From the NCBI GenBank assembly GCA_025558095.1, contig JAIVFI010000041.1:310001-374000 (forward strand): DNA of 64,000 bases. The letters run 5' to 3'. The notes beneath the pieces are model-generated. The model saw only the letters and a list, made by a program, of their open reading frames with translations, made no database searches and had not been told where the DNA came from. The position numbers and the translations under genes were made by a program. This DNA is from Hyaloraphidium curvatum SAG 235-1 (lineage: Eukaryota; Fungi; Monoblepharomycota). This document shows positions 2-60,204 of this stretch, piece after piece. Position 1 is the first letter of the stretch; each line of letters opens with the position of its first letter.

Positions 2-436
2 GTGCCTTTCGTGGCTGGCGTCGCCGCCATCGCCGCGGGCTCGTGCGTCCCGCTGTGGTGCCCCCTCGTCCTGCTCTTCTTTTTCTTCCTCGCCTTGAGG
101 GACCTCCTCGCCGTCGCCGCTGCCAACGCGCAGGTATCCACCACGCAGTCCCTCCTTCGGCGGGCGCACCGCGAAGCCGAGTCCATCCTCGCCCGCGCCT
201 CCGCCACGCCGGGGGGACCACCCCCTGGCCCCGCCGCCGCACTGGGCCACCACGCGGCGCTTCTGGCCGCCTACGCCGGGGACGCTTCGGCGGTCGCGAG
301 ATTCCTCGGGTTCGCGGCGGATTGGGGAAGCGCAAGGGCGGTCGCGGCCACGCTTCTCACCGTTGCCGTGGGACTGTGGTCTGTGCTGAGGTCCGCGGGG
401 GTGTACCTGACGCCGGACGTTGCTTGCTGGGCTTGA
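2..436 (+). CDS. 3' part of a GR-like/7TMIC-like seven-transmembrane family protein (copy 1, runs off window start)
   Basis: Carries the family motifs GSCVP, LxxVAAANAQV and ARFLGFAADWGSARAVAATLLTVAVGLWSVLRSAGVYLTPDVAC shared with eight other loci in the window. Confidence 0.8.
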   Translation: MPFVAGVAAIAAGSCVPLWCPLVLLFFFFLALRDLLAVAAANAQVSTTQSLLRRAHREAESILARASATPGGPPPGPAAALGHHAALLAAYAGDASAVARFLGFAADWGSARAVAATLLTVAVGLWSVLRSAGVYLTPDVACWA

Positions 437-907
437 GGTATCTGTGCAGAGCTGGCGAAGCAATCTCATCAAGCACGAATGCCAAACCCGGACGTCAGCG
501 ACCGTCGAATCCAATTCAAATACTTCGTTCTCCTGCACACGGCGATGACAGCTCGCTGCTCCCTGCCCGATTATTGTCCGTACCACTTGCATCCACGAGC
601 ATCGGCACCGGCAGGTCAATCCATCGATCGTCAATCTCCTTCCTTCTTTTCCGTGACCACGATGCCGCCTTTTGGGCGTGCGGCCCAATCACTAGTGCCC
701 CTACACCTGTCCGCAGTAGCCCGGCACTATTCTGGCCTACTGGCCAATGCAACAACTGGGTGGAATCTCTCCATCGTCAGCATCACCCTGAGGGACCTGT
801 ACACGCTCCATAGTACGAATCCTCTAATAAAGGAACTTCCTTCTCGCACATCTATCTGCTACTGGGAATCACCATCGTCTTCGTAGCCGGCGGATAGGGC
901 TTCCACG

Positions 908-1783
908 TCAACCCCAACGGATCACGAGAGGCACCATCTCCGTGTTGGACGGCCAATGACTCGGGTACCCTGCAGCTTCCACCGCGTGGGAGATCCAGTC
1001 CGAGTGCCCGATGATCGCGACGCGGGCCCACGGTCCGTCCAGGATCCACTTGAGCGTCCTCAAGGCGCGGAGCCTCACTTCAGAAGGGTCCTCGCGCGCA
1101 ACAGGATCGTGCCAAGGATCCTCGTCGCCCTCCAACAGGCCAAAATCGACCTCAGGATACGCTCCCCGGAGTTCGCCGCGAGCGCGCCGCATGTCACAGA
1201 TGTTGCGGCCGTGCCGCTCCCGGACCATCTCGGCGGCGACCACCGGCACCCTCTCCCAAAAGTCCTTGAAGCCAATCGCACCAGTTTCGAGAGCCCGCGT
1301 GAGCGGGGACACGACCAGCGCGTCCAGCTCTAGGCCGCCTTCCGCCGCACCCGAGACCGCGGCCCCCAGGTTCGCCGCCTGCTCCAAGCCGGCGTCGTTG
1401 AGCGGCGGGTCAAAGTACTTCGGGTCGGTGGCCTCCTCGCGCCACCTCTCCTTGCCCAGCTCGCGCTCGGCCGCGTTGTGGATGCCCTCCCCGTGCCGCA
1501 CCAGAAGGACCACCTTGGCGCCGGCGTCCCTCGCCGCGGCGAGCAGTTCCGTCCAGGAGTGTCCCGGAGAGACGCCGAGCTTAGAAACGTCCGAGTCGTT
1601 CCACTCGACGTGGGGGAGCGGGACGTGCGACAAAGTCCGCGGGTCGTCGGCAGGCGGGAACGGCGGGAGGGCGGGGAGGCGCGGCGGGGAAGCGGAGGAG
1701 AGCGACGCCGACGGCGGCATTGGGGCGAGGAAAAGGAGAGCGAAGGAGAGGAGGAGGACCCCGATGCTCCGAAAAATGGACAT
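908..1783 (-). CDS. Histidine phosphatase / phosphoglycerate-mutase-like protein (PMU1-like) with N-terminal signal or anchor
   Basis: LVRHGEGIHN catalytic motif, DPPLNDAGLEQA, SPLTRALET, ERHG..CD.R, late GHS His; hydrophobic N-terminus. Confidence 0.9.
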   Translation of the reverse strand: MSIFRSIGVLLLSFALLFLAPMPPSASLSSASPPRLPALPPFPPADDPRTLSHVPLPHVEWNDSDVSKLGVSPGHSWTELLAAARDAGAKVVLLVRHGEGIHNAAERELGKERWREEATDPKYFDPPLNDAGLEQAANLGAAVSGAAEGGLELDALVVSPLTRALETGAIGFKDFWERVPVVAAEMVRERHGRNICDMRRARGELRGAYPEVDFGLLEGDEDPWHDPVAREDPSEVRLRALRTLKWILDGPWARVAIIGHSDWISHAVEAAGYPSHWPSNTEMVPLVIRWG

Positions 1784-1921
1784 CGGCGCCGAGACGCGTC
1801 CCTGGCCGTTTCAAGCCCACCAGACGTCCCTGAAGCACTCCCCAAATCTCAACGGCCGGCGTATATATCATCCGCATGAAAACCGGATACAAGTCCAACT
1901 TCGAGATAGATTCCTAGCCAG

Positions 1922-6080: not shown

Positions 6081-9000
6081 ATGCGCCTGCGATTCGCGCT
6101 CCTCGTCCTCGCCGGGCTCGTCGCCGCGGCGGCCGCCGACGAGGCGCCCGTCGCAGTGCAGCCGCCGCTGCAGACGGCGTTCGTGTGCCACGGCGCCGAG
6201 CCCGTCGTTGCCGCGTGCCCCGCCGGCACGGCCATCGCCGTCGCCGACGCGTTCTACGGCGGCGACGACGAGCTCAGCCTCGACTGCCCCGCCGCGCCGA
6301 CCGACTGCGCGCACCCGCCCGCCCGCGCCGCCGCCGTCGTGCTCGCCGCCGCGCGCGTCTGCAACGGCAAGCCGGACTGTGCGCTCGCGCAGGACGCCCT
6401 GCTGCCGGTCGGCGACCCGTGCATTGGCGTAAACAAGGCAATCAGGCTGCGCTACGAGTGCGTGCAGCCCGCCGCCGCCGTTGCCCCCAGCAGCCCGCCC
6501 TCGGACGCCGCCATGTTCGCCCGCCGCCCCGGCACCTACGCGGGCGCAGGCTGCCCGTCGCTGCAGGCCGCCCTCGACGCCGGAAACAGGGCTGGCTACC
6601 GCTTCGTCAAGGACACCGAGGCGCCCATCAGGCTGCAGTTCGCTGACCTGGACCTGACGCAGCTGGATGCCAAGATCCGCGAGGCGACGGGAGGTGCCCT
6701 GGGGGTAGACACCGCAGCCAACATCGACATCGTCGCCGTAAACGTCCTGCTTCCTGCCGGCTCCGCCGTGTCCATCGGCAGGCACGCGAAAGCAAAGGTA
6801 GCGCTCTCCATCACCGCCATCAACATCGTCGCCGGGCCAGGGAGCAGGCTGGTGGTCTACTCGCTCGACGAGCGCGCGGACCCGCTGCCGGGCCCCGACG
6901 TCATTGTCCGCGCCGCGCGGATCATGGGCGAGCTGCACATCGACCAGAACGGGCTGGGCACGGACGACCCAGTGGGCCCCAAGGTCGGGCCGTTCAGCTA
7001 CAAGCGTGGGGCCGTCGGCGCGATCGATCGGCACGGGGCGATCTCTGATGACATCGCCACCCCCGTCCAGTCAACCCCTACAACGGTCCCAAGATCGGCG
7101 CCGACGGCCAGCCCAACTACGGCCTCGGCACGCACGGCCTCGCCAACATGCGCCCCGAGAACCTGCTCGTTCGGCAGATTCCCATCCGCGTCGCTTCACA
7201 CCCAGACGACTGCAACGGGACCCTGCTCTGCACAACGGACCCGGCCAACTACGACGCCATGTCGCCCTCGCAGGAGCTTACCGGGCTGCATCTTCAGACC
7301 TTCTACGCGCGCACCTGGCCCTCCGCCGCTCCCCAGGGCCAGAAGTTCGCGAGGTGGGGCACCAACGCGGACCGCTTCTCGTGGCCGGGCAAGGACGCTT
7401 GGGGCTCCGTCGACGCGAGGGTGGGCGGGTTCCTCCCCTTCGACGGGGAAGGCGCGCCATCCGCCTCGGGGGTGCGCGGGGAGAGGGGGATCGCGGCGTC
7501 GGCCGAGCACGAGGTGCGGCTGGAGGAGGACCCGGCGCAGATGTCCGAGATCCCGGGGGGCGTATTTCGCGCGCTGCGGGAGGTCAACGCCGCGCGTATG
7601 CGAGACCCGGAGGCGGTGCCGGAGCTCAACTACATCAAGCACGAGTGGCTGCGGGAATCGTTCGGGAGGCACAAGCACTTCCGGTACGAAGCCGTGCACA
7701 CCCCGCTGCTCGCGGACCCGGAGGCGTGGGGAGGTCCGGCACCGGAGGCGCTCGAGATCCTGGAGCTCTGCCTCGCCGAGACTGTCTCGGCGTCCCGCTT
7801 CGCCGAGGCCGCCGCGCGCGTGGCTGACCTCGCCGACGTGCTGCCCGACGCTGGGGGCGACGGCGACCCCGCGGCGTCAGCGGCGGTGGGCCGCATCCTG
7901 GGCGCGCACAGCGGGCTGCTTACGGGGCGGAGGGAACAGGCGATCGCCGTGGTGCCGTACCTCTCCGTGGACGCCATCTCGGGCCGGGTGAGTAAGGAGC
8001 TGGAGCACCTCCTCCAGCTCGAGGCAGAGGTGGGAAAGATCAACGCACAGGCGTCGTCGGTGGACGTCGCGCGACAGGCCGTCAGGCTGGGCACCGTCGC
8101 CGTCGAAGGGCAGGTGGCCAACTACGAGGGCGAGCTGGCGGCCTCGCAGACCTTCATTACTGCGCTGCAGCAGAAGGAGGCAGACATGCAGAAGGCCTAC
8201 GACGCGCTGCAGCCCGAGATGGAGGCGGCGGCGGCCAACTTCAAGAAAGCGCTGGAGAAGAAGCTCGCCATCGAGCTCACGTTTGCCGCCGTGGCCCTGA
8301 TCGGCGAGTTCAGCAACGCCCTCTTTGTCTTTTCGGCCGCACGCAAGGCGGTCAACGTCTTGAAGGATGTCAAGGAGAATGAGACGCAGGCCAAGCGGGC
8401 CTTCACCGAGATGGACAAGCTGGTCAAGGTGCTCGAGCTCATCGGCAAGTCTATCCAGCAGCTCCGGTACCTCAGCAGGGTTCGTCTGCGGGCGCGGTCC
8501 CGGTGCCGCGGGAAGCTCACGCCGCCTTGCGCCTACCTTTGCAGGCGATCCAGCCGGTGTACGCCGTCGCCATCGCCACGCACAACTCGAAGCCCATCAT
8601 GCTCAGCAAGGCGAACATCACCGAGTACTTTTCCACCGTGGTCGATTCGGGGTCCCTCTCCACGCTGGCGACGAGCGCGCTCGGGTACCAGGAGCTTAAG
8701 GACGCGGCGTACATCGCCTTCCAACCCGCCGTGGCCCTGGGCGTATCCGCGGCCACCAACGTCTCGCAGACCATGGCCAAGATCGCCAACGTCGGCGCGG
8801 AGCTCGTGGCGACGCAGACCCAGCTGCTCTCGGCCATGAACGCCCACGTACTCTCGGCCTACAAGCTGCAGTCGGCCCGCAAGCAGGCCGAGCTGGTCGC
8901 CAAGGATCGCGACGACCTGGACCGAGACGCGCAGGCGCTCGTCCGGGCGGCGTTCAGGCTCAACCAGGCCATGATCGCGCAGAAAGGCGTTGCGCTCGCG

Positions 9001-9708
9001 CGGGTGTACGAGGCCTGCCGCGCGTACGAGTTTGCCCAGACCCGAGCGTGCCCCGTCGAGCTGCCTGGGCTGGACAGTCCGGCCGGGGACTTTGCACGCC
9101 AGATCGAGTCGGTCGCCCTCGAGGGGCTCAAGCCCGAGAGCTACATGAGCCAGTGCTACTGCGGCGCGGCGTTCAACCTCACCGACCCGGCACTGATTGC
9201 GGACCTGCGGGCCAACGCCAGCGCGACGGTGGATCTCACGGGGCTCTACAGGGATTCGCACCTGGCGGTGCTGGACAACGTGCACCTGGCGCGGATCGAC
9301 GTGCGGCCGCACGGGGTCGCCCCGCCCGAGGGAGCATCCAAGCCCGTGCTTTCGATGGTGCTCTCCACGGACGGCTACTACCTCAACACCGATTCTGTCG
9401 CCGGCACGAAGGCTGTGCGGAGCTTCCTCGCCCCCGGGTTCACCGTCGCCAACCAGGTCCGGCCGACCGTGGGGTGGCAGGTGCTCGTGGCCGGGCGCTT
9501 CACGGACCAGGAGGCCGCGCGTTTTTTTTCCGCGACGCCGTTCGCGCGGTTCGCGCTCGCCGAGCACCCGCTGGGGGAGAAGTGGGACTGGTCGGGGGTC
9601 GAGGCGCTCGAGGTCGTCCTCAGCGGGTGGGGCAGGGCGAGCACCGCGTCATCGTGGCGGGTAGGGGAGCAGACCATGGTTGGCAATACGTGCGGTTCGT
9701 GCTGGTGA
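6081..9708 (+). CDS. Secreted SUEL/galactose-rhamnose-lectin plus putative pore-forming toxin-like protein, paralog A (~1165 aa, 3 exons)
   Basis: Signal peptide; SUEL pattern CPAG..IAVADAFYG...CNGKPDC...GDPCIGVNKAIRLRYEC; introns 7006-7070 and 8480-8544 restore one frame; VPYLS followed by a coiled-coil region and hydrophobic hairpin; C-terminus ATPFARF...WDWSGVEALEVVLSG. Confidence 0.75.
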
Positions 9709-10175
9709 TTTCACCTTCGACGCATAGAAATGGGGCACCGAATCGGCCTGGTTACTCGCGTCGATCCGATCGGCGCTCCCCGCTCCCCGTGCGACTCCTG
9801 CGGCCGGTTTCCCGTCAGCGGCAGTACCGAAGCGTCCCCGAGGAGCGGGGCCCTCGCGACCGACAAACTAGCTGCGGACTATGGACCCTGGGGCTTTGCT
9901 GGTCCCCGGGCCGACACTTCCTGCGCCAGAGCGTCCATTCGCAGCGCTCGGCGGCCTCCGTGGGAAGGAAAGGAAGTGGGGCGACTTCTGCGAGCAGCGG
10001 GCTGCAACACCGGCTGTGTGCCAAGCCCGACCTATTGGAAAAATGGATCCTTCGTTCGGTGGCCGGAGCTGTGCGCTGCGCCCGCGGGGAAACTTCAGGG
10101 CGGCTGGCGGACGGGGCTGGGTTCAAAAGGAGCGGGCCGATCGGCCGTCCGCGCCAAAGCTCTCCCACATTCGCC

Positions 10176-16232: not shown

Positions 16233-16488
16233 GTGGCACACACTCGGCCCCTGACTACATTTTGAGCATTGTGGCGCCTTTATTCGTCGTCGACCACCAC
16301 AGCTCGCAGTGGTTGCTGCACCAAGGACTGCCAGGTCGCGGACAGGAAGCGGAGGCACGGGGTCAACTGCAAGGTGATCAGAGAGAATCGTGGTTCCCGT
16401 CGAGGCGTCTGGAGCTCGCAAGGCTAGTTATATGTCGAAAGGTTGGCTTACAACACCGAACAAGGTCGAACCAGCACGAGACACTCCG

Positions 16489-17538: not shown

Positions 17539-19028
17539 TCACGTGCACGCGAAATCCATCGTCATCCTGACGCCCAGGCCCCTCAGGATGCTCCAGATGC
17601 CCACGATCAGAGTGATCGTCGTCACCACAACCGTCCGGACCACACCGTAGTCCACCGTCAGCCCCAGGAACTTCCCTCTGATCCCCGGGTCCTCCAGGTA
17701 GCCCGACAGCCGGGCGTCGTGCCGTGCCGCCGCGCGGCGGAGCTCCGCATCGGGCGGGTCCGGAAGCTCCCTGAGTTCCCGCCTCGCGGCGTGGTACAGC
17801 GCGCGCACTGAGTTGACTTGCCCGTTGCTGGCGGCCAGGTTGAGCAGGTCCACCAGGGCCAGTCCAAGCACCAGGTAGGCGAAGAAGATTGGATAGAGGG
17901 CCGGCAGGCATCCGCCCGAAACCATGACGATGCAGCTGCAGACCAGAGCCGTGAGCGCCGAGACCACGAGGGCGCTTGAAAAGTTGGTCTGCGATACGCG
18001 CGAGCGCCACGTTGCGGAGAGGGCGCGGTGCACCTCGACGTAAAGGTCCTCGTCATGCGGATCCCCTGGACCGGGCTTGTCCAGCGGTGCCGGGGGCTCC
18101 CCATGATCCACGGCGGAAAGAACGCGGTGACGCAGGGAGCGCAGCACGTGCGAGAGGGCAAGCCGCATCATTCGGTGCGAGATTCGTTCGGAAAGCTGGA
18201 ACATGGCGATGTTCCCGCTGAAGCGGACGGCGGTGGCAGAAGCTGTACAACACAATGGCGGCGACTGCGAGGGCGGAACGTTAGCACTAGGCAACTGCAA
18301 TGAACGACTGTCTCACGGCTCAAGGCCCCCAGGGTCGCGGACCATGGGGTTCGCCAAAAGTCATATCCTTGCGTGACTATGGGCGTAAAAATCATGATGA
18401 CCATCGCAAAGGTCAGCAGGACGGATTTGAAGGCCAGTTCGAGCCAACGAAGGAGCGCAGCCCGGGCACCGAGCCCTCCTGCGCAACCCGGGAGCGGACA
18501 CGGGCATAGCTCGTCGGCGGAATCGTGGACCAGGATGTGTTGCCCACTCCGCTGTGCCTCAGACCACCTCACTAGGGGGGCGAGGGGGTGCTTGTCGAGG
18601 ATTGCGGAGCCCGAGGTCGGCAGCCTGAGGGACCCGCGGTACGTGGCCATGAGACCCTGCCCCACCGTCCATTGCGTAACGGCCACCAGCAGCAAGGCGA
18701 AGCCAAGCGAGAAGTTGTTCAGGGGGAACTGCGCGTGCGGGAACGCCCACGACGCGCTCAGCACAGCGGCGAAGGCGGCGAACATGAAGGCCGCCCGGAC
18801 GATGCCCGCCGCCGCCAGGGGCGCTAGCACGAGCTGCATGCGCGTCGCGGCGCGCAGGGCTGGCCACGGCGCGAGTCCGTCCACCAACGCCCGTGGAGTG
18901 AGGGGTCGAGCATCCCGCGCCGTCGCCGCGCGGTCGGGAAACGGGGGCGCTCCGGAGAGACTCGGCGGCGCAGAGGGCCACGCGGGAAAAGCGGCCAGCC
19001 AGGTTTCGGCCGTCGGCTCGCCGCTCAT
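17539..19028 (-). pseudogene. GR-like 7TM family copy 2, with an apparent frameshift
   Basis: ETWLAAFP, HDSADELCPCPLPGC, GGCLP, LAASNGQV, GKFLGLTVDYGVVRT...IWSILRGLG..C; after intron 18316-18265 the frame shifts near 18240 (pseudogene or sequence error). Confidence 0.7.
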
Positions 19029-20680: not shown

Positions 20681-22252
20681 ATGGACAGCAAGCACGCCTC
20701 CAGTTCAATTGACGACGCCCCCTCGGTCGCGCTGGGCCCCGCGGAATGGCTGCTCCTGCTCCCGGCGCCGCCGCAGCCGCCCGCCACGATGTCCGGCGCG
20801 GCGCCGCCGCCGGATCCCGCGGCGGGACTCCGCGTCGCGTCGCCCCTCACCTTGAGCGCATTCGTCTCTGCGCTCGCCGAGAAGTCGCCCGCGCTGGCCC
20901 GCTCCGTGCTCGTGCAGACGGCTTTGGAGCCCTCCGCGACGCGGCCGCTCCTCCGCTACCTCATCCTCTGGGTTTCTTTCGTGCCGCTCCTCGTCCCGGC
21001 GTGGATGTTCAACGACGGCCGCTTCGGCTCGCGGCAGCTCGCGGTCGGCACCGCCACACTCACCGTCGGCTTCTTTGGCGCGACGCTGTTCATCGGGCTG
21101 TTCGCGGCATACCGCGCCTCGCTGGCCGCCCTGGGCGCGGTCGGCGGTAAAGCCGGGCACCAGGGCGCAAAGGACCGCGAGTATTCCTCGCACGGCGCCG
21201 CGGGCCTCGCGAGGTGGATCCAGTACTGTTCTGGCGCCCTCGGCCCGAGGACCGGCCGCCTGCTGGAGCACGACGCCAAAGATTCCCTCTGCCCCTGCCC
21301 GAATCCGAGCTGCGCCGGGAACCTCGCCCGCCGTGCGGGCACCCTGAGGATCCTCGAGGCCGCCTTCAAGCTCTCCACCGTCGCGTTCGCGGCCTTCTGC
21401 TTCTACTGGACGCCCCTCGCCTCCGCGGGGATCGCGCAGCGCACCTGGACCGAGCCGTGGTCGACACCCTTCGCGGCTCTGGCCGTGCTGGGCCTCGTCG
21501 TGCTTTCCGTCCCGATCGGCCTGGTCCGGTTCTCCACCAACCTTGCGCTGCTGGACCTCTCCCGGCGCGTCGGCCTGCGCGCCGTGCGGATCTCCCTGGG
21601 CGAGATGCTCGCTCGTTACCGGTCGCTGGGCGACCCCGTGCCTTTGGAAACCGACGACCCCGCGGCGCCCGACTTCGCAGCTCCCGCCCCCGCAAGTCCC
21701 AACATCCGCCCGGGCAGCGTCTACCTCGACATGCACATCCTCTTCACCTCCGCCTGGCGCCGGCGCATCCTCTTTTTCGGCGCCTCGCTCCCCCACATCC
21801 TCGCCGCCACCTTCCAGGTCGCCATGGCGACGATCAACGCGGCGGCGTGCTCCTGCATCCCCGCCGTCTACCTGATCTACCTCTGCTACACCCTCTCGGT
21901 CAACCTCGTCGATCTGGTCAACGTGGCGGCGGCAAACTCGCAGATCGAGGCCGTGAGGGGGCTGTACCTCGACGCCCTCCTCGAGCTCCGCTCCCTCCTC
22001 CGCCGCGCCGCCCTGTCCCCCTCCCTCGAGGACGCCGCGCTGCTCCGCGCCGCATCCGCCGACGCCGACGTGCTCGCCAGCCTGGTCGAGGTCGACAGGT
22101 ACCGCGCGCGGTTCCTGGGGTTCGCCGTGACCTTCGGCATGGTGCGGACGCTGGGGATCACCATGGTCACGCTGGGGGTGGCGATGTGGTCCGTGCTGAG
22201 GGGACTGGGGGTGTGGGTGACGATGGAGAACGTGTGCACGGTGGGGCCGTGA
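20681..22252 (+). CDS. GR-like 7TM family copy 3 (intact, intronless)
   Basis: Seven hydrophobic segments; PAEWLLLLP, DGRFGSRQL, HDAKDSLCPCPNPSC, SCIP, VAAANSQI, ARFLGFAVTFGMVRT...MWSVLRGLG..C. Confidence 0.85.
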   Translation: MDSKHASSSIDDAPSVALGPAEWLLLLPAPPQPPATMSGAAPPPDPAAGLRVASPLTLSAFVSALAEKSPALARSVLVQTALEPSATRPLLRYLILWVSFVPLLVPAWMFNDGRFGSRQLAVGTATLTVGFFGATLFIGLFAAYRASLAALGAVGGKAGHQGAKDREYSSHGAAGLARWIQYCSGALGPRTGRLLEHDAKDSLCPCPNPSCAGNLARRAGTLRILEAAFKLSTVAFAAFCFYWTPLASAGIAQRTWTEPWSTPFAALAVLGLVVLSVPIGLVRFSTNLALLDLSRRVGLRAVRISLGEMLARYRSLGDPVPLETDDPAAPDFAAPAPASPNIRPGSVYLDMHILFTSAWRRRILFFGASLPHILAATFQVAMATINAAACSCIPAVYLIYLCYTLSVNLVDLVNVAAANSQIEAVRGLYLDALLELRSLLRRAALSPSLEDAALLRAASADADVLASLVEVDRYRARFLGFAVTFGMVRTLGITMVTLGVAMWSVLRGLGVWVTMENVCTVGP

Positions 22253-42799: not shown

Positions 42800-44406
42800 A
42801 TGGAGGAGGAGTCCGCGCCCGCGGAGCCGCTTGCCACATTCTCTCCCGCCGAGTGGGCTGCGCTGTTTCCGGCTCCGCTCCGCGCGGACGACCTGCCCGC
42901 CGAGCTCGTCCCCCTCGTGGCGAAGGCAGCCGACGAGCGCGCGGCGGCGCCACCGCTGGGCCCGGCCGACGTCAGCGCGGCGCTCGCGGACGCGCCGGTG
43001 TCGCGCCGGCTGCTGCATCTGCAGGGCTTCCTCGGCCGCGCCGTGCTGCCGCGCTTCGCCCTCCTGCGGCTCGCCCAGCAGGCGTTCTACGTTTTCTTTG
43101 CGGCGCTCGTGTGGATCGAGAACGACGGGCGCTTCGGCACCCGGCAGCTTGTCGCGGCCACGGTGGCAAGGGTCGTTGCGCAAGTCATCTGGGACTGGCG
43201 CGTGCTCGCCGGTCGCTTCTCCTCCCCGGACGACCGTGAAATCTTCCTGGACAACGAAGCAGTGGCCGCTGGCGCGGATGGCTCTGTGCTGGCCGGAATT
43301 GTCCGCTACCGGCTACTGGAGCGTGCCGGCGGAAGCTGGCTCCTCGAGCACGTGCCGGGCGATACCCTCTGCACTTGTTGCGGGTCTCGGTGCAGCGGCA
43401 ATCTGATCCGGAGGTCCCTTTGGATGTTTGCTGCCATGCCTCTATTCCTGGCGATCCTGCAATTGGTGATGTTCAACCTGCTCATTGTCTGGACCCCCTT
43501 GATCACATTTGGCGCTGCAACGTGGTCGACGCCGTGGGCGGCCACTTTCTCTGCTGTCGGCCTGGCCGTTGTTAGTTGCGCCTTAGTTGTTGTTCCCCTG
43601 GCCATCCGCCAACATAGCGTTGCGCTATTCCTGCTCGAAGCCCGGATGCACCGAAGGGCGGTCGCGAAGTGCCTGGACTCTGCCTTGGGGAGTTTCCGAA
43701 TTGCGCTGGAACCACTTCGCGAGGGGACGTGGAAGGCACGCGATGCCGAATCACGTCGCCCTTTACGCCGTGCTCGTGGGACATTGGCAGCAGGCCAGGG
43801 GAGTCGCAGACTCCGGCCGGGCCGTCATAGTCACGGGTCTCCTTGCAGAGTCGGTCGCGCTCCTTATTGTCTTGGTGGGTTAGAGCGGACAGGTGTCGTC
43901 GCATTCGACCCATTGACAAGGCTCCCCGTTCGTTGCAGCTGGCTTCCTCCTGCATCCCGGCCTACAACCTGGCGGCGGTCGTGTACAACATCTTCCTCCT
44001 GGTCACGCTCGACCTAAGCGAGGTCGCGGCGGCCAACACCTCCCCCCTGCGCATCGCGGGCCTCTACCGCTCCGCCGCGTACTCGTTCCGCTCCATCGGG
44101 ATGTCCGCCGTCGCCCGCGGACTTTCCGCGGCCGCTGCCGCGGCCGACATCCACGAACGGATCCTTTCCGGCTTCGCGGACGTGGAACCGCAGCGCCCCC
44201 GGGCCTTCGGCGTCCCCGTCACCTTCGGGCTCGTGAGGACGGTCGTGGCGACGCTGTTCACGCTCGGGGTGGGGCTGTGGAGGGTACTCAGGGGGGCGGG
44301 CGTGGGGGTGACGATCGAGATGGTGTGCCCGGTGGGTTGCGCCGGGGGTTGGGCTGCGCGCGGCTCGCTGACGGTGTGCGTGCAGACCCCAGGTCCGGCA
44401 AGCTGA
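42800..44406 (+). pseudogene. GR-like 7TM family copy 4, with an apparent frameshift
   Basis: FSPAEWAALFP, DGRFGTRQL, HVPGDTLCTCCGSRC, SSCIP, VAAAN, RAFGVPVTFGLVRT...LWRVLRGAG..C; frameshift near 43700-43750; intron ~43874-43938. Confidence 0.7.
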
Positions 44407-48386: not shown

Positions 48387-49844
48387 TCACCCCCTGCACG
48401 CGATGTCCAGGCTCACGACGACCCCCGCGGACCTCAGCAGCGTCCACAGCCCGACCAGCACCGTGAACGAGGTCAGCAGCACCGTCCTCACGACCCCGAA
48501 ATCCACCGCGATCCCCGCCAGCCGCGCCCTGGTGTCTCTCACACGCGCGAACGTGGCTAGGACGTCCGCGGCCCGCGCCGCGTCGTCCCTGCGGAGCGAC
48601 AGCCCGCGGAGCTCCGTTTCGGCGGCGGAGTACAAGGCGGCGATGCCCTCGATCTCGGCGTTGGAGGTCGCGAGGCTGACGACGTCCACGGTGAAGGTGA
48701 CGAGCATCTGCACGAGGATGGCGGGCACGTAGGCGGGCACGCACGAGCCGGCGGCGATGTTGATGATCGAGCAGACGGCGGCCGCAGCGAGGTAGAAGAC
48801 GACGTAGGGGGCGCTGGTCATGCCCTGCCCCGAGCGGGCCGCCCAGATGGCGGTAAAGAGGGCGTGCAGTACGACCAAGGGTTCGTCGGCGGAATCGGTG
48901 GGGTCAGGGACTCCAGAGGAGCCGTCTTCCTTCTCGGCGCCGTCTTTGGTCCGGAAGCGTTGCAGCAAGGCGCGCAGAGCGATGGCGGCCGCCCTGTGAC
49001 GGAGCCGGAACTGCAGGTTCCGTATCGGCGGGTTCGCAACGAAGCGCACTGCTACGAAGTAAGGGCAGCACAGTGCGAGGTAGACGACCACGCTCAGGTT
49101 AGGAACGATGCCCCACCACACGTGCCAGGTAACGGGTGCCATTGTCACCAAGCACGTGTAGACGATCAGAAAGAGGGAGGCGATAAGGACCGACGTCCTG
49201 ACGAGGTACTCTGCCCAACGCCAATAGCCTGCAGCCCGTGGTAGCCCAGCCGCACAGCTCTTCAGGAAGCACGGGCAAAGGTCGTCGTCCGCGTCGTGGG
49301 CCAGAAGGCGTGCCTCCGATTCGCCCTTGGAACGTACCACCTGCAGGTATCGGGCGACGACGGCGAAGGGGTGGGATGAGGCGTCCTCGTCGGGTCCGCC
49401 GGCAAGTCGAGCGCTTGCGCGCGTAACGAGGCCAGCGCGGGCGGCGGAGGCAATGAGGACAAAGAAGGACATGCACGCGTAGCACACAACGGCAGCTAAC
49501 CCGGCGGCCATCTGCGTCCTGCCGAAGGGGCTGGCGGCCGTGGCATTTGCGAACCAGGCGACGACGGCGCACAGCGCGGCGAACGGCGCCCACGCAATCG
49601 ACAAGAGAGGCACCGCCCGGCCCGCCCCGCGCACCAGCGATATCTGCAGCGCGGCGGCCGACCACGCCGGTGTGCAATCCCGCAGTTCGCGGAGCAGCAC
49701 GCGGCGCGTCAAGGGCTCCGCCGCACGCAACTCTCTGCCGGGGACCGCGGGCGGGGGCGCCCCCAGCACCCGCACTGCCGGTGCTGCCTTGGGCGGGGGA
49801 TCCGGAACAACTGCAAGCCACTCGCGAGGCGCTAGGAACTCCAT
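48387..49844 (-). CDS. GR-like 7TM family copy 5 (intact, intronless)
   Basis: APREWLAVVP, PFGRTQMAAG, HDADDDLCPCFLKSC, GSCVP, LATSNAEI, ARLAGIAVDFGVVRT...LWTLLRSAG..C. Confidence 0.85.
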   Translation of the reverse strand: MEFLAPREWLAVVPDPPPKAAPAVRVLGAPPPAVPGRELRAAEPLTRRVLLRELRDCTPAWSAAALQISLVRGAGRAVPLLSIAWAPFAALCAVVAWFANATAASPFGRTQMAAGLAAVVCYACMSFFVLIASAARAGLVTRASARLAGGPDEDASSHPFAVVARYLQVVRSKGESEARLLAHDADDDLCPCFLKSCAAGLPRAAGYWRWAEYLVRTSVLIASLFLIVYTCLVTMAPVTWHVWWGIVPNLSVVVYLALCCPYFVAVRFVANPPIRNLQFRLRHRAAAIALRALLQRFRTKDGAEKEDGSSGVPDPTDSADEPLVVLHALFTAIWAARSGQGMTSAPYVVFYLAAAAVCSIINIAAGSCVPAYVPAILVQMLVTFTVDVVSLATSNAEIEGIAALYSAAETELRGLSLRRDDAARAADVLATFARVRDTRARLAGIAVDFGVVRTVLLTSFTVLVGLWTLLRSAGVVVSLDIACRG

Positions 49845-50505: not shown

Positions 50506-51463
50506 TCAGTGTCCGTTCGCCCCGTTCACCTTGGCCTTCTTCGCCGGCTTGCCCTCTCCTTCGTCCCTTCCCTCCCTCCTGAGCTGCGACGGGATGATCT
50601 GCCCCGCCCAGTAGTTTTCGCGGCCGTACGGGAGCAGGTCCATCGCCGCGAACGCGGTCTGTAGCCCCTCCAGCCCCCGCGCGTAGGCCGCGTAGGTCTT
50701 GTACACCTTGCCGTCGCGCTTGTGGAACACGGTGATGCCGGGGAGGTACCGCATCGGGAACGGCGCCCCCGAACCCCAGTTGTACAGCGCCAGGGGGTGG
50801 TCGGGGTGGGCCTCCTTAAGCTTGGCGACCCACGCCCTGCCGGGCCCGGCGGACTTGAGGAACTCCATGGCGACGGCCACCTGCTCATCGGTGACCTCGA
50901 CGCCCATGTCGGCGGCGAAGGTGCTGCCCGCGGTGGAGTAGACGGGGATGGCCCAGCCGCGCTTGGCGGCCCAGGCGTCCATCTTGGCGGCGTCCGCGGC
51001 CGCGGTGATGACGAGCTCGGCACGCTCCATTATGTGGGCGTAGGCGCCTGAGGAAAGAGTCAGTCGGCGTCGGGGGAGGCACGCGGCCCGGCGGCGGGTC
51101 ACCTTGGAGCGAGTCGACCCAGAAGGAGCAGGTCGGGCAGCCGTCCTCGTCCTTGGGGTTGTACATCATGTGGTACACAATCAGGTCGTCCTTGTCGCCG
51201 AACAGCTCCTCCAGCGAGCGCGGGCCGCCGACGCCCTGGAGGGTGTAGCCGCCGACCTCGACCCACGGCAGCTCCTGCCGCTCGGCGACGATTGCGTCGT
51301 GCAGCCGCGTGAGCTGCCTCTCCTTGGCGGCGAGGGCCTCGCGCGCTTTGCGCCACTCGGCGGCGCCGACGACGGTGGGGGCCGCGCCGTCGGCGCGGCG
51401 CGTGGAGCGCGTCACGTCGCTCTGCTTGGGGAGGTCGAGCACGGGGGCGGCGGCGGGGGCCAT
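50506..51463 (-). CDS. DUF899 thioredoxin-like protein
   Basis: EW..AR..L..KE..LTR..D...AER..LPW, SL.ELF, LIVYHMM, CPTCSF..D, TY..YARG.E, DLLPYGR; one intron near 51101-51048. Confidence 0.88.
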
Positions 51464-52245: not shown

Positions 52246-53739
52246 ATGGCGGCCCCTCCACTCTTTGACTGCGTGATTATGGGCGCCGGCCTCGCCGGCC
52301 TCTCGGCGGCGGTCGCGCTCACGCGGGCGGGCGCCAAACCCATCGTCGTCGAGGGCCGCACCCGCGCCGGCGGACGCGCGTGGACCGAGAACGGCTTCGA
52401 CCTCGGGTGCACGTGGCTCCAGGACTGCGGGGAGGGTGGGAACCCGCTGTACGATATCGCCAAGAAGAACAAGCTTAAGCTAAAGGAGTCGGACTATGGC
52501 GAGACGACGCAGATGTACAGCGTCGTGGGGGAAGTCTCGGACTCGTTCGACGCCGAGACGGAGAAGCTGTTTGAGAAGGTCAACAAGAAGGTGGAGAAGA
52601 AGCGGGAGGACACCGACACGGACGTGCCCCTGCTGCAGCTCGTGGCCGAGGCCATGAACGAGCTCGGGATCACACAGAACGCGGACGCGAACAAGGTGCA
52701 CATGCAGGCCATGCTGAACGTCGGCCACGAGTACGCCGCGGATCTGGCGGAGCTCTCGGGGTGGGAGTACGACGAGGGAGAGGAATTCGACGGCTCAGAC
52801 TACGTGCTCGCGAAGGGCATGGGCCAGATCGTGTCGATCCTCGAGAAGCAGGCAGCGTGCCCCATTGTGCTCGGCGCCCCTGCCATCTACGTCACCCACA
52901 TTGAGGACGGCAACATTGCGGTCCGTGTGGCCGATGGACGCGACTTCTTCGGCCGCACGGCCATCGTCACCGCCCCGCTCGGGGTGCTCAAGGTTTCGGC
53001 CTTCCCTGGCACCCCGCCGACGCCCGCCACCATCGGCTTTCAGCCGCCTCTGGACGAGCCGGTCCTCGAGGCCGTTCGGAAGCTCGGCATGGGTGTCTTG
53101 GAGAAGATGGTGCTCGAGTTCCCGTCCTCGGCCGGAAAGCTCTTCCCCTCGGCCGAGATGTTCTCCTTCTTCGACGCCGATCCCTACTGCTCCCCGACGG
53201 AACCGGGCCGCCGCCCCTTCTGCTCGATGCTCAACCTCAAGAAGTTCACCGGCCGCCCCGCCGTTCTCGCCTTTGCCGCCGGCTCCGACGCCCGCTGGCT
53301 TGCCTCGCTCCCCGACGAGGCCGTGCGCGGCATGCTCCTCAATCAGCTCCGCCAGATGTTCGGCAGCCAGCTCCCGGAGCCCACCTCCTTCGTGCGCACG
53401 CACTGGGGCACCGACCCCTTCTCGGGGGGATCCTACTCGTTCTACGCCGTCGGCAGCAACCAGAAGGACCGCAAGGCGCTCCGGGTGCCCATGTGGGGCG
53501 GGAAGCTGCTGCTCGCGGGAGAGCACACCAGCGTGGGGTACCCGGCGACCATGCAAGGGGCATTCCTGGAGGGGAAGGACGCCGCTGGGAGGGTGCTGGG
53601 GCTGCTGGGAATCAAGGGGAAGAAGGGGGCGGACCCCGCCGCGTACCGGGACAAGGAGGCGGACGAAGATGAGGAGGAAGAAGAGGAAGAGGAAGAGGAA
53701 GAGGAGGAGGAGAGCGAGAGCGAAAGCGAAAGCGAGTAA
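52246..53739 (+). CDS. Flavin-dependent amine oxidase (polyamine oxidase/LSD1-like family) with acidic tail
   Basis: GAGLAGL.AA, EGR.R.GGR, DLG..W, T.PLGVLK, W..DPFS.GSYS, AGEHT, T.QGA. Confidence 0.93.
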   Translation: MAAPPLFDCVIMGAGLAGLSAAVALTRAGAKPIVVEGRTRAGGRAWTENGFDLGCTWLQDCGEGGNPLYDIAKKNKLKLKESDYGETTQMYSVVGEVSDSFDAETEKLFEKVNKKVEKKREDTDTDVPLLQLVAEAMNELGITQNADANKVHMQAMLNVGHEYAADLAELSGWEYDEGEEFDGSDYVLAKGMGQIVSILEKQAACPIVLGAPAIYVTHIEDGNIAVRVADGRDFFGRTAIVTAPLGVLKVSAFPGTPPTPATIGFQPPLDEPVLEAVRKLGMGVLEKMVLEFPSSAGKLFPSAEMFSFFDADPYCSPTEPGRRPFCSMLNLKKFTGRPAVLAFAAGSDARWLASLPDEAVRGMLLNQLRQMFGSQLPEPTSFVRTHWGTDPFSGGSYSFYAVGSNQKDRKALRVPMWGGKLLLAGEHTSVGYPATMQGAFLEGKDAAGRVLGLLGIKGKKGADPAAYRDKEADEDEEEEEEEEEEEEEESESESESE

Positions 53740-53883: not shown

Positions 53884-55389
53884 ATGCCTCCCCCGCCACC
53901 GACGGACCTGCTGGACTTTTCCGCCGCAGAATGGCGGGTCATTTTCCCCACCGCGCCGCCGCCGTCGGCGGGCGCGCCGTTCGCGGACCGGCTGACCCTG
54001 GCCGCGGACGGGGACAGCGACAATCCGTTCCCGGGCGGCGACAAACACGCCGGCGCCGACCAATCGGACCCGATTACCTACGAAAAATGGGTAGAGGCCG
54101 CGTCGAAGCGTGGAGGTGGTTGGTTCGCGTTCCAGGAGCGTGCCATCCGGACGCTCTCTCCATGGATGGCGCTCAACCGCACGTGGTTTCCCCCTGTCAT
54201 CCACGTCCTGGGCGTTCTCTGTGTCATGCCGTTTCCATTCTTTTTGGACTTCGGGGGCACATTTGGCCGCACGCAGCTCATTGCGGGCACGGTCAATCTG
54301 GGAATAGCTGTCGTCGTGGGGAACCTCGCCTTCACCGTCGTCGTCACCAGCAAGACTAGGAACGCGCCGCGAGCATGCGACATTCATCTCTTCGTCGTGC
54401 AGCAGCTGTTCCGGCTTTGGCAACTGCAGAAGGACAGCGGGTCGATTCTCATCGCGCACGTTGACGGTGACCCTCTGTGCCCGTGCGACGAATGCGCCCG
54501 CCCACTCGTGCGGTGGATACCCTGGGAGCGCCTACTTCGGAGCTTTGCGCAGCAGATTTCCACGTTGTTGTACATGTTGCTGATGGGCTGGACGGCCCTC
54601 GTCTACCTGGGCGGCTCTGTCTGGCCCAAGTCCTGGGGTGCAACTCTCGGCGCCTTTTCGTTGTTCGCGATCCTGCAGTACAATCTTCCTGCATTCTTTG
54701 CCGGCTTCGTTCCAGCGAACGACCCGCTCGTTCGCATCGGAACTCGCATCTACCGTCGCGCTACGTACCTCGGGCTCTCCTCTTTTCTGATCCGTGCTGC
54801 CGCTGCCCTGACGGATCCCGCCTTTGACTCGGAAATATTGCCCGCCAGAGAGCTTTTCGTTGAACTTCACCGCGGCTATTCGATCCGCTGGTCCGCCTGC
54901 GGCGTCAACCCTATTACCTCCTTGCTTAGTTTTGCATTCCCCATGGCCATCCTACTGCTCATCATCGCGGTTTCCACCGGATCCTGCATTCCCGGCTGGA
55001 TTCTTTCATATTTCGTCTGGGTCCCCCTCTTCGTGGTGCTCGGCTTGTTCGAGATTCCGAGCATCAACGGCCAGATGGACGCCATCACGGAACTGTATCG
55101 CGGCGCGCACCTCTCGCTGGTCAGCCTCCTCTCCGAATCAGCGGGGCTCCCCGCCACGCCGGAGCGCGAGGCGGCGCGGGACCGCCTGCGCGCCCGGGCG
55201 GCGCTGCTCCATGCCCTGACGGGCTCCGCGGAACACCACAGGATCAAGTTTGCGGGGCTGCCTGTCACCTATGGTTTGGCCAAGACGATCGCCGTGACGC
55301 TGCTGACATTGGTGGTCGGGTGCTGGAGCATCTTGCGCGGCTTCGGAGTGTACGTGACCTTGCAGACGTACTGCCCGACGCCGGCTTAG
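53884..55389 (+). CDS. GR-like 7TM family copy 6 (intact; tandem subfamily)
   Basis: FSAAEWRVIFP, GTFGRTQLIAG, HVDGDPLCPCDEC, GSCIP, SINGQM, IKFAGLPVTYGLAKT...CWSILRGFG..C. Confidence 0.85.
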   Translation: MPPPPPTDLLDFSAAEWRVIFPTAPPPSAGAPFADRLTLAADGDSDNPFPGGDKHAGADQSDPITYEKWVEAASKRGGGWFAFQERAIRTLSPWMALNRTWFPPVIHVLGVLCVMPFPFFLDFGGTFGRTQLIAGTVNLGIAVVVGNLAFTVVVTSKTRNAPRACDIHLFVVQQLFRLWQLQKDSGSILIAHVDGDPLCPCDECARPLVRWIPWERLLRSFAQQISTLLYMLLMGWTALVYLGGSVWPKSWGATLGAFSLFAILQYNLPAFFAGFVPANDPLVRIGTRIYRRATYLGLSSFLIRAAAALTDPAFDSEILPARELFVELHRGYSIRWSACGVNPITSLLSFAFPMAILLLIIAVSTGSCIPGWILSYFVWVPLFVVLGLFEIPSINGQMDAITELYRGAHLSLVSLLSESAGLPATPEREAARDRLRARAALLHALTGSAEHHRIKFAGLPVTYGLAKTIAVTLLTLVVGCWSILRGFGVYVTLQTYCPTPA

Positions 55390-55591: not shown

Positions 55592-56127
55592 TCAAACAGC
55601 TGTGCAGAACCACGTCACATGGTCGTCGAGCTCCGACCCGCCAAGTTCCGGCACTGACATGGCATCGTCCCGCGCCAGAGCCTCTTTCGCGCACCCGAGG
55701 TCATGCACGGCGTTGATGAGCCGTTCTGCGTCCATGACGGTCGCCGCCGAAAGCCTCGAAATCAGGTCCTTGTCCGTGACGAAGCTGGTCACCGTGCCCC
55801 TCAGCTCCCGGGACACGCCGAGCGAAACCACCGCAGGCGGGCCGAAAGCCACCACGCGGACGTCTGTGTCGATCTCCGGGGCGAGCAGGGAGCCCACGAG
55901 TGTGGCGATCGCGGCGCCGAGGGAGTGCGACCAGCACGATGCGGAAGCCGGCGGTTGGCGTCCACCAAAGACCTGAGGCCCATCATAAACGGTGAGGTCG
56001 GCTTTGTGACGAGCTGCGCCACGGCGAGGAAGAACCCGTGCGCGTACCCGCCTCGGAAGGGCGCGCTGTCGGCCGCAAAGTCACACAGCAGGTCCGTGAT
56101 CCCGGCACTACCGCGTACGACGATCAT
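55592..56127 (-). pseudogene. Class 3 lipase fragment (frameshift in the GHSLG motif)
   Basis: IVVRGS.GITDLLCD, AH.GFF, HSLGAAIA, AFGPP, D.ISRLS. Confidence 0.75.
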
Positions 56128-56458
56128 GAACGCGATCACGGAACTATATCGCGGAGCGCACCTCTCGCTCGTGAGCCTTCTTTCCGAGTCTGCGGGTCTT
56201 TCTGCTACAGTTCACCACGAGGGTGTGCGAGACCGTCTGCGCGCGCGGGCCGCGCTACTCCAGGCGCTCATGGGCTCGGCGGAGCACCACACGATCAGGT
56301 TTGCGGGGCTCCCGATTACTTACGGGCTTGTCAAGACTATTGCAGTCACTATGTTAACGCTGGTGGTCGGTTGCTGGAGCATCTTGCGGGGGTTCGGGAT
56401 CTTTGTAACATTGCAGTCGTACTGCCCTACGCCTGCGAAGCTAATGACCTGCGGCTGA
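56128..56458 (+). pseudogene. 3' fragment of the GR-like 7TM family (copy 7)
   Basis: AITELYRGAHLSLVSLLSESAG...RFAGLPITYGLVKT...QSYCPTPA; the 5' three-quarters is absent. Confidence 0.85.
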
Positions 56459-56723: not shown

Positions 56724-58220
56724 ATGCCTCCCCCACCACCAGCGTACCTGCTGGACTTTTCTGCGGCCGAGTGGCGCGTGATTTTCCCGACTGCGCCGCC
56801 GTCGGCAGGCGTGCTGTTCGCGGACCGGCTGCCCCTCGCCGCGGATGGGGCCGGCGGAGCCCACGTCGGCGACAAACACACCGACGCCGTCGAATCCGAC
56901 CCCATTACCTATGACAGATGGCTACAGGCCGCGTCGAAAGGCGGCGGGGCGTGGCTCGCGTTCCAGGAGCGCGCCCTCCGGGTACTTTCGCCGTGGGCGA
57001 CGTTCAGTCTCACATGGTTCAATCCCGTCCTCCACATCCTGGGCCTCGTCTGTGTCATGCCGGTCCCGTTCTTTCTGGACCCCGCGGGTACTTTCGGTCA
57101 CACACAGCTCATCGCGGGCACCTTCAATCTCACATTATTCATCGTTGCGAACCTCTGGTTTTCGATTGTCGTTCACAGGACGTCCAGGGGCGCGCCACGG
57201 GCATTCGTCATTCATCTTGACGGCGTGCAACAACTTTTTAGACTTTGGCAACTTCAGGACGACGCGGTGTCGATGCTAGTCGCACACATTCCCGGCGACC
57301 CTCTGTGCCCATGCCGCGACTGCACCCGCTCACTCGTGCAGTGGATCCCTTGGGAGCGCCTACTTCGGAGCCTGGTGCAGCAGACGTCCACATTCTTTTA
57401 CATGTTTCTCATGCGCTGGACGGCCCTCGTCTACCTGGGAGACTACGTCTGGCCCCAAGCGTGGGGTGCGGCTCTTGGTGCCTTTTCGCTGTTCTCGCTC
57501 CTCCAGTACATTCTCCCTGCGTTCGTTTACACCTTTTTCCCCGCGAGCGACCCGCTTGTTCGCACGAGGACTCGCGTGTACCGCCGAGCGACGTACCTCT
57601 CGCTCTCCTCCTTTCTGTCCCGGTCGGCCGCCGCCCTGATGGATCCCGACTTACACTTTGACACTCTGCCCGACAGAGAGCTTTTCGCTGAACTGCATAA
57701 AGACTACGCGTTGAGCTGGTCTGCTGTTGGCGTTAATCCGAGCACTTCTTTTCTCATTACCGCGACCCTCCCAATCACTTTCCTTCAACTCGTCATCGCG
57801 GCTTCCACGGGATCTTGCATTCCAGCTTGGATCCTTTCCTGCTTCATCTGGGTCCCTCTCTTCGTGATGCTCGCCTTGTTCGAGATTCCGAGCATCAACG
57901 GCCAGATGGACGCCATCACGGAACTGTATCGCGGCGCGCACCTCTCGCTCGTTAGTCTTCTCTCTGAATCTGCGCGCCTGCTGGCCACGCCGCACCGCGA
58001 GGGGGTGCGGGACTGCCTGCGCGCCCGGGCCGCGCTACTCCACGCGCTCTCGGGCTCGGTGGAACACCACAGAATCCGCTTTGCAGGGCTACCGGTCACA
58101 TATGGCCTGGCCAAGACGATCGCGGTCACAATGCTGACGCTGATGGTCGGCTGCTGGAGCATCCTGCGGGGTTTCGGGATCTTTGTAACCTTGCAGACGT
58201 ACTGCCCCACGCCTGCGTAG
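56724..58220 (+). CDS. GR-like 7TM family copy 8 (intact; tandem subfamily)
   Basis: Close paralog of copy 6; HIPGDPLCPCRDC, GSCIP and the same TM7 motif. Confidence 0.85.
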   Translation: MPPPPPAYLLDFSAAEWRVIFPTAPPSAGVLFADRLPLAADGAGGAHVGDKHTDAVESDPITYDRWLQAASKGGGAWLAFQERALRVLSPWATFSLTWFNPVLHILGLVCVMPVPFFLDPAGTFGHTQLIAGTFNLTLFIVANLWFSIVVHRTSRGAPRAFVIHLDGVQQLFRLWQLQDDAVSMLVAHIPGDPLCPCRDCTRSLVQWIPWERLLRSLVQQTSTFFYMFLMRWTALVYLGDYVWPQAWGAALGAFSLFSLLQYILPAFVYTFFPASDPLVRTRTRVYRRATYLSLSSFLSRSAAALMDPDLHFDTLPDRELFAELHKDYALSWSAVGVNPSTSFLITATLPITFLQLVIAASTGSCIPAWILSCFIWVPLFVMLALFEIPSINGQMDAITELYRGAHLSLVSLLSESARLLATPHREGVRDCLRARAALLHALSGSVEHHRIRFAGLPVTYGLAKTIAVTMLTLMVGCWSILRGFGIFVTLQTYCPTPA

Positions 58221-58294
58221 CGCCGAACGGGTTTGTGAATGCTTACCGACGAAGCTAATCAAATAGATGCTTGCACTGCGGATCGTAGAACACT

Positions 58295-58562
58295 CAATCT
58301 ACACAAAAAGCGAAGCCCTGCCCCCCGAAGTTTACCCTTCCATCTCGTAGAGCCACTGAGCCGTGCCCTCCACCCGACTACTTACCTCACCGGCCGCCCT
58401 CCCAGCCGTCGTGGACGCCCCCTGCAGCGATCCCGATCCGGAGTGCTGGCCGTCCGAAGAACCTCCAGTCGAGCCGCCGCCGTTGCCGCGAACGCAAAGA
58501 TTGACCCAGCGTCGGAATACGGGTTCTGTGCAGCGCACCAGGGCCGCCGTAAGCCGCTGGCG
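58295..58562. repeat. Inverted copy of the ~270 bp repeat at 24920-25188
   Basis: Reverse-complement match. Confidence 0.9.
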
Positions 58563-58829
58563 TGCCGAAGTCATGAAGAGGGCCCTCAGCCCATCGATGT
58601 CATCCCCGGGGATCGAGTCCTGCCCAGAGAGCTTTCAAATAAAGTCGCGCTCAACAACAACAGTTCTTCACTTCGAGCGAAAGCGACCATGTAACGCTCA
58701 GGCAATCAGAGGATGAGATCTAGATGACGACCGGGCAGTTGTTGTAGCCCCGTTCTAGACACGACTTTCTCGATGGACGCGCGTCTGATCGATTTACGTG
58801 GTTCCGCCGATTCTCCGCTTCCGGTCGAG

Positions 58830-60204
58830 ATGCCTCCCCCGCCACCGACGGACCTGCTGGACTTTTCCGCCGCAGAATGGCGGGTCATTTTCCCCACCGC
58901 GCCGCCGCCGTCGGCGGGCGCGCCGTTCGCGGACCGGCTGCCCCTGGCCGCGGACGGGGACGGCGGCAGCCCGTTCCCGGGCGGCGACCAACACGCCTAC
59001 GCCGGGGAATCCGACCGTCTTACATATGACAGATGGATTCAGGCCGCATCGAAGCGCGGCGGGGGCTGGCTCGCGTTCCAGGAGCGCGGCATCCGGGTGC
59101 TCTCGCCGTGGATGGCGCTCAACCTCACGTGGTTTACCCCTGTCGTCCACGTCCTGGGCCTTCTCTGTGTCATGCCGTTTCCGTTCTTTTTGGACTCCGG
59201 GGGCACTTTTGGTCGCACGCAGCTCGTTGCGGGCACCGTCAATCTGGGAATAGCTATCGTCGCGAACTTGTCTTTCACGGTCGTCGTCACCAGCAAGACT
59301 AGGAACGCGCCGCGGGCATGCGACATCCATCTCTTCGTCGTGCATCAGCTGTTCCGGCTTTGGCAACTGCAGAAGGACGGCGGGTCGATCCTCATCGCGC
59401 ACGTTGACGGTGACCCTCTGTGCCCGTGCGACGAATGCGCCCGCCCACTCGTGCGGTGGATACCCTGGGAGCGCACTCTACGGAGCCTCGCACAGCAGTC
59501 TTCGACATTTGTGTACATGTTTCTCATGCGCTGGACAGCACTCGTCTACCTGGGCGGGTACGTGTGGCCGCAGGCGTGGGGTGCAACTCTCGGCGCCTTT
59601 TCGTTGTTCGCGATCCTGCAGTACAATCTTCCTTCATTCTTTGCCGGCTTTGTTCCCGCAAACGACCCACTCGTTCGCATCGGGACGCGCATTTACCGCC
59701 GCGCGACGTACCTCGCGCTCTCCTCCTTTCTGACCCGGGCTGCCGCCGCCCTGACGGATCCCGCCTCTGACTCGGACACCTTGCCCGCCAGAGAGCTTTA
59801 TGCCGAGCTCCACCGTGGCTATGCGGTCCGCTGGTCCGCCTACGGCGTCGACCCCATCACTTCTTTGCTTAGTGTTACTTTCCCCGGGGCCATCCTTCTG
59901 CTCATCATCGCGGTTTCCACTGGATCCTGCATTCCCGGCTGGATTCTTTCATGTTTCGTCTGGGTCCCCCTCTTCGTGGTGCTCGGCTTGTTCGAAATTC
60001 CGAGTATCAACGGCCAGATGGACGCCATCACGGAACTGTATCGCGGCGCGCACCTCTCGCTGGTCAGCCTCCTCTCCGAATCGGCGGGGCTCCCCGCCAC
60101 GCCGGAACGCGAGGCGGCGCGGGACCGCCTGCGCGCCCGGGCGGCGCTGCTCCATGCCCTGACGGGCTCCGCGGAACACCACAGGATCAAGTTTGCGGGG
60201 CTGC
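58830..60204 (+). pseudogene. GR-like 7TM family copy 9, interrupted at the start of TM7 by an LTR retrotransposon
   Basis: Matches copy 6 up to ..IKFAGL, then switches abruptly to TGTCAGG (LTR end) at 60205. Confidence 0.88.

Follow-up and report, generated by a model that had tools for sequence, protein, structure and literature searches.

What use a non-motile fungus could have for proteins resembling the chemoreceptor channels of insects is a question raised by a 64,000-nucleotide stretch of the genome of Hyaloraphidium curvatum SAG 235-1 (the window: contig JAIVFI010000041.1, positions 310001-374000; 66% GC; assembly of 31.9 Mb in 55 contigs). An initial annotation, made from the letters alone, reported nine copies of a seven-transmembrane (TM) protein family here and likened them to insect odorant and gustatory receptors (ORs and GRs) of the seven-transmembrane ion channel (7TMIC) superfamily. 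The host, placed in Monoblepharomycota, is a culturable, unicellular freshwater fungus with no zoospores; it lacks a flagellum and rhizoids and reproduces via 4-8 internal spores (PMC6899921). Our analyses identified a real and strikingly large family of probable 7TMICs, for which we propose a function by analogy: homology to 7TMICs is very probable, ion-channel activity probable, and ligand-gated sensing, in a broad sense, rather likely.

Topology and predicted fold

The seven hydrophobic helices described initially were recovered both in the family-mean hydropathy profile, which peaks at 90, 121, 219, 256, 356 and about 376 (these two a hairpin pair) and 461, and in AlphaFold2 models of two window copies, E and F. 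The loops also proved as described, short after helices 1, 3 and 5 (10, 15 and 6 aa) and long after helices 2, 4 and 6 (74, 80 and 59 aa). Lysine plus arginine came to 8.3, 9.7 and 7.0 in loops 2, 4 and 6 and 8.3 in the N-terminus, against 1.1, 0.5 and 0.1 in loops 1, 3 and 5; by the positive-inside rule the N-terminus is predicted to be inside and the C-terminus extracellular. A signal peptide, said to be lacking, was indeed absent from 115 of 119 full-length members, while four have a signal-like N-terminal stretch. All full-length copies begin with a conserved short helix, F-x3-E-W-L-A-x-F-P, followed by a Pro-rich linker.

Both models were of high quality, that of E (44-sequence alignment) having a predicted local distance difference test score (pLDDT) of 89.8 and a predicted TM-score (pTM) of 0.90, and that of F (115 sequences) a pLDDT of 91.9 and a pTM of 0.90. 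In model E, and likewise in F, long helices (243-303, 322-366 and 372-416) corresponding to TM4-TM6 reach into the cytoplasm, and TM7 is split: helix 420-438, strands 441-442 and 445-446 and helix 449-472 in E, and helix 426-451, two strands and helix 463-486 in F. The structure search that had been proposed returned insect ORs and GRs as the top matches of both models, with Foldseek TM-scores of 0.25-0.42 to solved ORs and GRs, as well as TM-scores of 0.57-0.58 to two unannotated clusters, cnidarian and echinoderm, whose 7TMIC status is unconfirmed. Neither an outward N-terminus, nor another helix count, nor a best match to G protein-coupled receptors (GPCRs) or transporters was found. A class A or fungal STE2/STE3/PTH11-like GPCR was rejected on the inward N-terminus and a fold that is not a rhodopsin-like bundle; transporter folds scored low Z values and none was among the significant structural matches. 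As modelled, the family shows the helix number, orientation, loop lengths, long TM4-TM6 and split TM7 of the 7TMIC superfamily (Himmel et al., bioRxiv 2023.08.30.555482), for which a TM-score above 0.5 to other members is also used; the scores to solved ORs and GRs lie below that value.

Pfam scans of the nine window proteins and 44 members gave no match, including to 7tm_6, 7tm_7 and DUF3537, and DUF3537 (PF12056) gave none among the 44 members at E-values up to 10. Scans of the genome with PF12056 and PF08395, run without a positive control, found nothing, and a profile search of the PDB had no match. Judged by sequence, the family lies outside GR and GR-like (GRL) proteins proper and Pfam DUF3537. 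The text and supplement of the Himmel et al. tree-of-life screen, the Dryad tables and journal version being outside this check, do not mention Hyaloraphidium, and our literature search found no paper joining Hyaloraphidium with gustatory receptors, or TMEM39 with odorant receptors.

Conserved residues and selection

Near-invariant residues (numbered as in E) include H183, D187, C190, C192 and C197 in cytoplasmic loop 1, the outer cysteines C368 (TM5-6 loop) and C483 (C-terminal tail), and R284, N395, G444, R453, T461 and G474. The loop-1 group forms a family-specific cytoplasmic site, H-x3-D-x2-C-x-C-x2/5-C, which from its conservation is likely a Zn2+ or redox site, and C368 and C483 may form a disulfide linking the TM5-6 loop to the tail, again to judge from conservation. 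On the second half of TM7 (S7b), positions 454, 458, 461, 465, 468 and 472, mostly T, T, T, G, S/G/T and G, lie on one face, within 40 degrees. The C-terminal pattern given in the initial annotation was over-specified, its literal form matching none of the 119 full-length members, while its key positions are 88-97% conserved.

Column identity was 0.41-0.43 in the hairpin and S7b versus 0.14-0.19 in TM1-6. The ratio of nonsynonymous to synonymous changes (dN/dS, Nei-Gojobori) was 0.26-0.33 in eight paralogue pairs, 0-0.20 in the part from intracellular loop 3 (IL3) to TM7, and no higher than 0.5 in any region of any pair; purifying selection is concentrated on the TM6-TM7 part. The same arrangement, a conserved pore and anchor beside a variable ligand region, has been reported for ORs and for 7TMICs in general.

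Family size and relatives

The nine copies of the window are a small fraction of the family. The loop-1 motif pattern had 435 genome matches against 40 in a reversed control, which, scaled by its presence in 103 of 119 full-length members, gives ~456 loci; an independent TM7 pattern (298 matches against 39; sensitivity 68/119) gives ~453. These counts take in pseudogenes. A profile search against 1.84 billion representatives clustered at 50% identity returned 468 matches at E-values up to 0.001; among the 30 looked up, the later samples of which were chosen for odd composition, 25 were named H. curvatum, one was window copy A and four were environmental. The copies are spread over most contigs at ~1 per 70 kb, the window being enriched roughly tenfold, and ~450 of them would make up roughly 2% of the 32-Mb genome. 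Members are mostly intronless, and 45 different full-length open frames were present among the retrieved loci; pairs of members share 27% identity on average, with invariant motifs. The H. curvatum protein KAI9002171.1 (P0003) has a family locus of this assembly to which it is 100% identical. The public model P0002 (788 aa) fuses a family member with a secreted protein carrying a SIMPL domain (PF04402); annotation has probably run two genes together.

The suggestion that the repertoire is lineage-specific needs qualifying, as at least one other fungus has family members. Sequencing run SRR26194948 contains three full-length paralogues on contigs of 54-55% GC with eukaryotic, fungal-type neighbour genes (DIL, YVC1/TRPY1, hamartin), one contig bearing a second, split copy. 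Among the proteins compared their best matches were H. curvatum members (29-33% identity), and for a neighbouring gene the identity to the H. curvatum counterpart is 65-73%. Together with these paralogues, a metagenome protein nested within the copy C clade (support 100) indicates that part of the radiation is older than the split between H. curvatum and the other fungus. Metagenome and viral contigs, scanned with sequence patterns, yielded no confirmed relative.

The models were also matched by uncharacterised giant-virus proteins of 440-580 aa (Edafosvirus A0A3G4ZRZ0, Catovirus A0A1V0SCD1, Mimivirus LCMiAC02 A0A4D5XEV6 and Yasminevirus A0A5K0UB49; BFVD) at Foldseek probabilities of 0.69-0.84 but E-values of 0.15-0.85, and by an Atlas cluster (313 aa, 57% viral, Nucleocytoviricota; TM-scores 0.49/0.70). 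Giant viruses may possibly have 7TMIC-fold proteins; the match is weak and we found no paper on it.

The nine loci of the window

The nine loci share motifs as reported and are mutually homologous by tblastn. A search of all six frames with a hidden Markov model (HMM) of the family recovered exactly these nine, with E-values between 5e-34 and 1e-149, and nothing further in the window. Chance open frames in GC-rich DNA were rejected on the HMM E-values, dN/dS and RNA. As loci all nine are real, but only A, C, E, F and H (Table 1) are intact genes; B and D are frame-shifted, G is a 3' fragment and I is split by a long terminal repeat (LTR) retrotransposon, so that four of nine are broken.

The whole open frame of copy A (contig positions 308955-310427) has no stops, and residues 351-494 of P0063 match at 100% identity. 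Copy B, listed initially as locus 17539, in fact starts with an ATG at 19028 on the minus strand. B and D were read exon by exon, the frames of D separately. Run X1, its type itself a guess, holds spliced RNA, since two GT-AG joints are present; its contigs cover B and most of C (21081-22232, zero differences), and these two copies are transcribed. Beyond the splice observed in B (joint 18264/18317, ends CT..AC on the plus strand), a stop is reached in 69 codons, with phase checked exon by exon, and because the RNA contig shows no indel against the genome, the frameshift is real. Splicing to an acceptor 22 nt farther along would restore the frame, but no such splice was seen in the RNA contigs of run X1. 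B is probably a pseudogene; D is probably one too, or else has a frameshift from assembly error.

Copies F, G, H and I are clustered in tandem and young (identity in DNA 78-90%; support 100 in the Shimodaira-Hasegawa-like approximate likelihood ratio test, SH-aLRT), with A-E in separate deep branches. G is 82% identical in DNA to the 3' end of H, with nothing homologous further upstream. In copy I, DNA identity to F stops at the insertion junction (60204/60205) and resumes (95%) in its 3' end at contig positions 375689-375842, beyond the window and ~5.5 kb further on; the element between, whose junction starts TG, has a long open pol frame and reverse transcriptase, RNase H, integrase, SH3 and chromo domains. 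With young tandem copies, broken loci, deep divergence and a dN/dS of about 0.28, the birth-and-death evolution proposed initially is supported.

Table 1. Family copies and other features of the window (window coordinates)
Feature	Position	Strand	Description
Copy A	2..436	+	Final 144 codons (TM5-TM7) of intact 494-aa member starting ~1 kb upstream of the window
Copy B	17539..19028	-	Transcribed, spliced, frameshifted in TM4; tblastn matches in two frames
Copy B intron	18265..18316	-	52 nt, GT-AG
Copy C	20681..22252	+	Intact, intronless, 523 aa, transcribed
Copy D	42800..44406	+	Frameshift near 43740; probable intron 43875-43938; three-frame match to paralogue P0059
Copy E	48387..49844	-	Intact, 485 aa; structure modelled
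Copy F	53884..55389	+	Intact, 501 aa; structure modelled; first of tandem F-G-H-I cluster
Copy G	56126..56458	+	3' fragment of 104 homologous codons, from the last part of TM6 through the C-terminus
Copy H	56724..58220	+	Intact, 498 aa; P0017 identical
Copy I	58830..60204	+	88% identical to F; interrupted in TM7 hairpin by retrotransposon
Ty3-type chromodomain LTR retrotransposon	60205..64000	-	Inserted in copy I; ~5.5 kb overall
Long open frames	7148-14031 and 27393-30164		GC-rich, no Pfam match
Saccharopine-dehydrogenase-like gene	14143-15621	-
154-bp repeat pair	16080-16233 and 20154-20307		Probably small mobile elements
Intron	20030-20086	+	57 nt, GT-AG, spliced in run X1; gene between copies B and C
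268-bp inverted repeat pair	24919-25186 and 58295-58562		94% identical; one of the two lies between H and I; probably small mobile elements
DUF899 gene (PF05988)	50509-51102	-	Family described as bacterial, in a fungal genome
Flavin amine oxidoreductase	52246-53739	+	Directly upstream of copy F
Class-3-lipase-like remnant	55592-56128	-	Frameshifted; HSLGAAIATL and AFGPP motifs, by eye; adjoins fragment G

Proposed function and alternatives

Fold and topology support the chemoreceptor-channel reading, with channel activity suggested by the modelled fold. By analogy with OR and GR structures, each intact gene would provide one subunit of a tetrameric channel, the four joining via the cytoplasmic anchor (S4-S6 and S7a), with the conserved S7b helices lining a single central pore and the variable S1-S6 bundle forming a different small-molecule pocket in each paralogue, which on being filled would tilt S7b and let cations enter. 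A paralogue-specific S1-S6 pocket combined with a shared S7b pore is the arrangement of GRs (PMC12635824). We consider it moderately likely that this is a new, very large fungal 7TMIC lineage of OR/GR fold serving as a ligand-gated ion-channel repertoire. Two qualifications apply: the animal TM7 motif (T/S)Yhhhhh(Q/K/E)(F/L/M) is present in none of the 119 full-length members, which retain a 95%-conserved T at the expected spacing from the hairpin but not the Y and Q of the TYhhhhhQF gate, and the host has no zoospores. The family lacks the animal gate motif, which is also largely absent from SpunGRL1 and DUF3537 proteins, and its gating chemistry must therefore differ. Taxis is unlikely in cells that do not swim; the output might, at a guess, be growth, spore release, dormancy or defence.

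Immune-receptor repertoires have many dispersed copies, rapid turnover and transposons nearby, and the same traits in this family, as well as a host without flagellum and rhizoids, would suit a channel of the same fold used for surveillance of non-self or danger (parasites, grazers, competitors, incompatible cells) and triggering defence or cell death, instead of sensing nutrients or habitat in general; we think this unlikely, as the low dN/dS in all regions gives no coarse sign of an arms race and no fused death domain was seen. An improbable alternative is a 7TMIC fold without gated conduction, the proteins being solute permeases, from many of which an osmotroph would profit, or endoplasmic reticulum or vacuole proteins with a TMEM39- or DUF3537-like role. 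The unconserved gate Q/F, TMEM39 as top named feature neighbour and the mostly unestablished role of non-insect 7TMICs agree with this, but the structural matches contain no significant transporter fold, and the strongest conservation falls on S7b, whose T/T/T/G/S/G stripe fits a shared pore or subunit interface.

We regard it as very improbable that the family is unrelated to 7TMICs and owes its likeness to ORs and GRs to convergence or to a generic helical-bundle match. That transposons or segmental duplication amplified the family with no selected role might be read from the broken loci and the retrotransposon within one of them; this is scarcely credible and already largely refuted by purifying selection in 8/8 pairs, the many distinct full-length open frames, motifs invariant at so low a mean identity, transcription, and intact paralogues in another fungus.

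If they form a ligand-gated channel repertoire, ~450 diverged, selected paralogues would mean that the fold has expanded to a large set of receptors on two or more occasions. We put at about even the chances that an insect-scale chemoreceptor repertoire evolved independently outside animals, as several hundred ligand-gated 7TMIC channels in a non-motile unicell and its relatives that dispense with the Q/F gate and carry a metal-binding loop specific to the lineage, and was previously undescribed. Hundreds of mostly intronless genes offer material for asking if ligand-gated conduction is ancestral, for finding the residues that replace the Q/F gate and for learning what a flagellum-less cell senses.

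Comparison with known systems

TMEM39 (PF10271) was the top named language-model neighbour (0.93-0.94), a single lead with no HMM match and no backing from the fold search. Plant DUF3537 was also a neighbour (score 0.90-0.92; 182-188 shared features) and has a similarly unrecognisable TM7 motif, but differs in its plant families of 4-12 members and long IL3, and has no hmmscan match from the H. curvatum family. PHTF-like class-B 7TMICs also have a fairly long loop 1 (about 75 aa in the H. curvatum family), though theirs is a much larger insert, and no feature or sequence match to PHTF was seen.

Chytrid and protist GRLs (SpunGRL1, SpalGRL1, Vitrella, Thecamonas, Protostelium; PMC7746228) share the topology of the family and, compared by eye, a comparable hairpin, G-hydrophobic-x-hydrophobic-D/T/E, together with a basic residue ending TM7b, and SpunGRL1 likewise retains one of four motif positions. 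However, the GRLs known from fungi amount to one gene in each of two Spizellomyces species, with at most six per protist and 4-12 members in plant families (PMC7746228), versus ~450 in H. curvatum, and these GRLs stop just after TM7b, the Cys-bearing tail being present only on the H. curvatum side.

Insect ORs and GRs (AaegOR10, AgamOR28, MhOR5, Orco, BmGr9, Gr43a, Gr64a) have the closest folds to both models. The H. curvatum proteins differ from them in their low identity (5-13%), the missing Pfam 7tm_6/7tm_7 match, ~100 aa of additional length, the reduction of TYhhhhhQF to T, the loop-1 Cys/His site and outer Cys pair, and mostly intronless genes in a host without neurons. They resemble them in having seven TM helices with the N-terminus inside, long S4-S6, an S7a/beta-hairpin/S7b arrangement and a conservation peak at pore and anchor, and in belonging to a large birth-and-death family.
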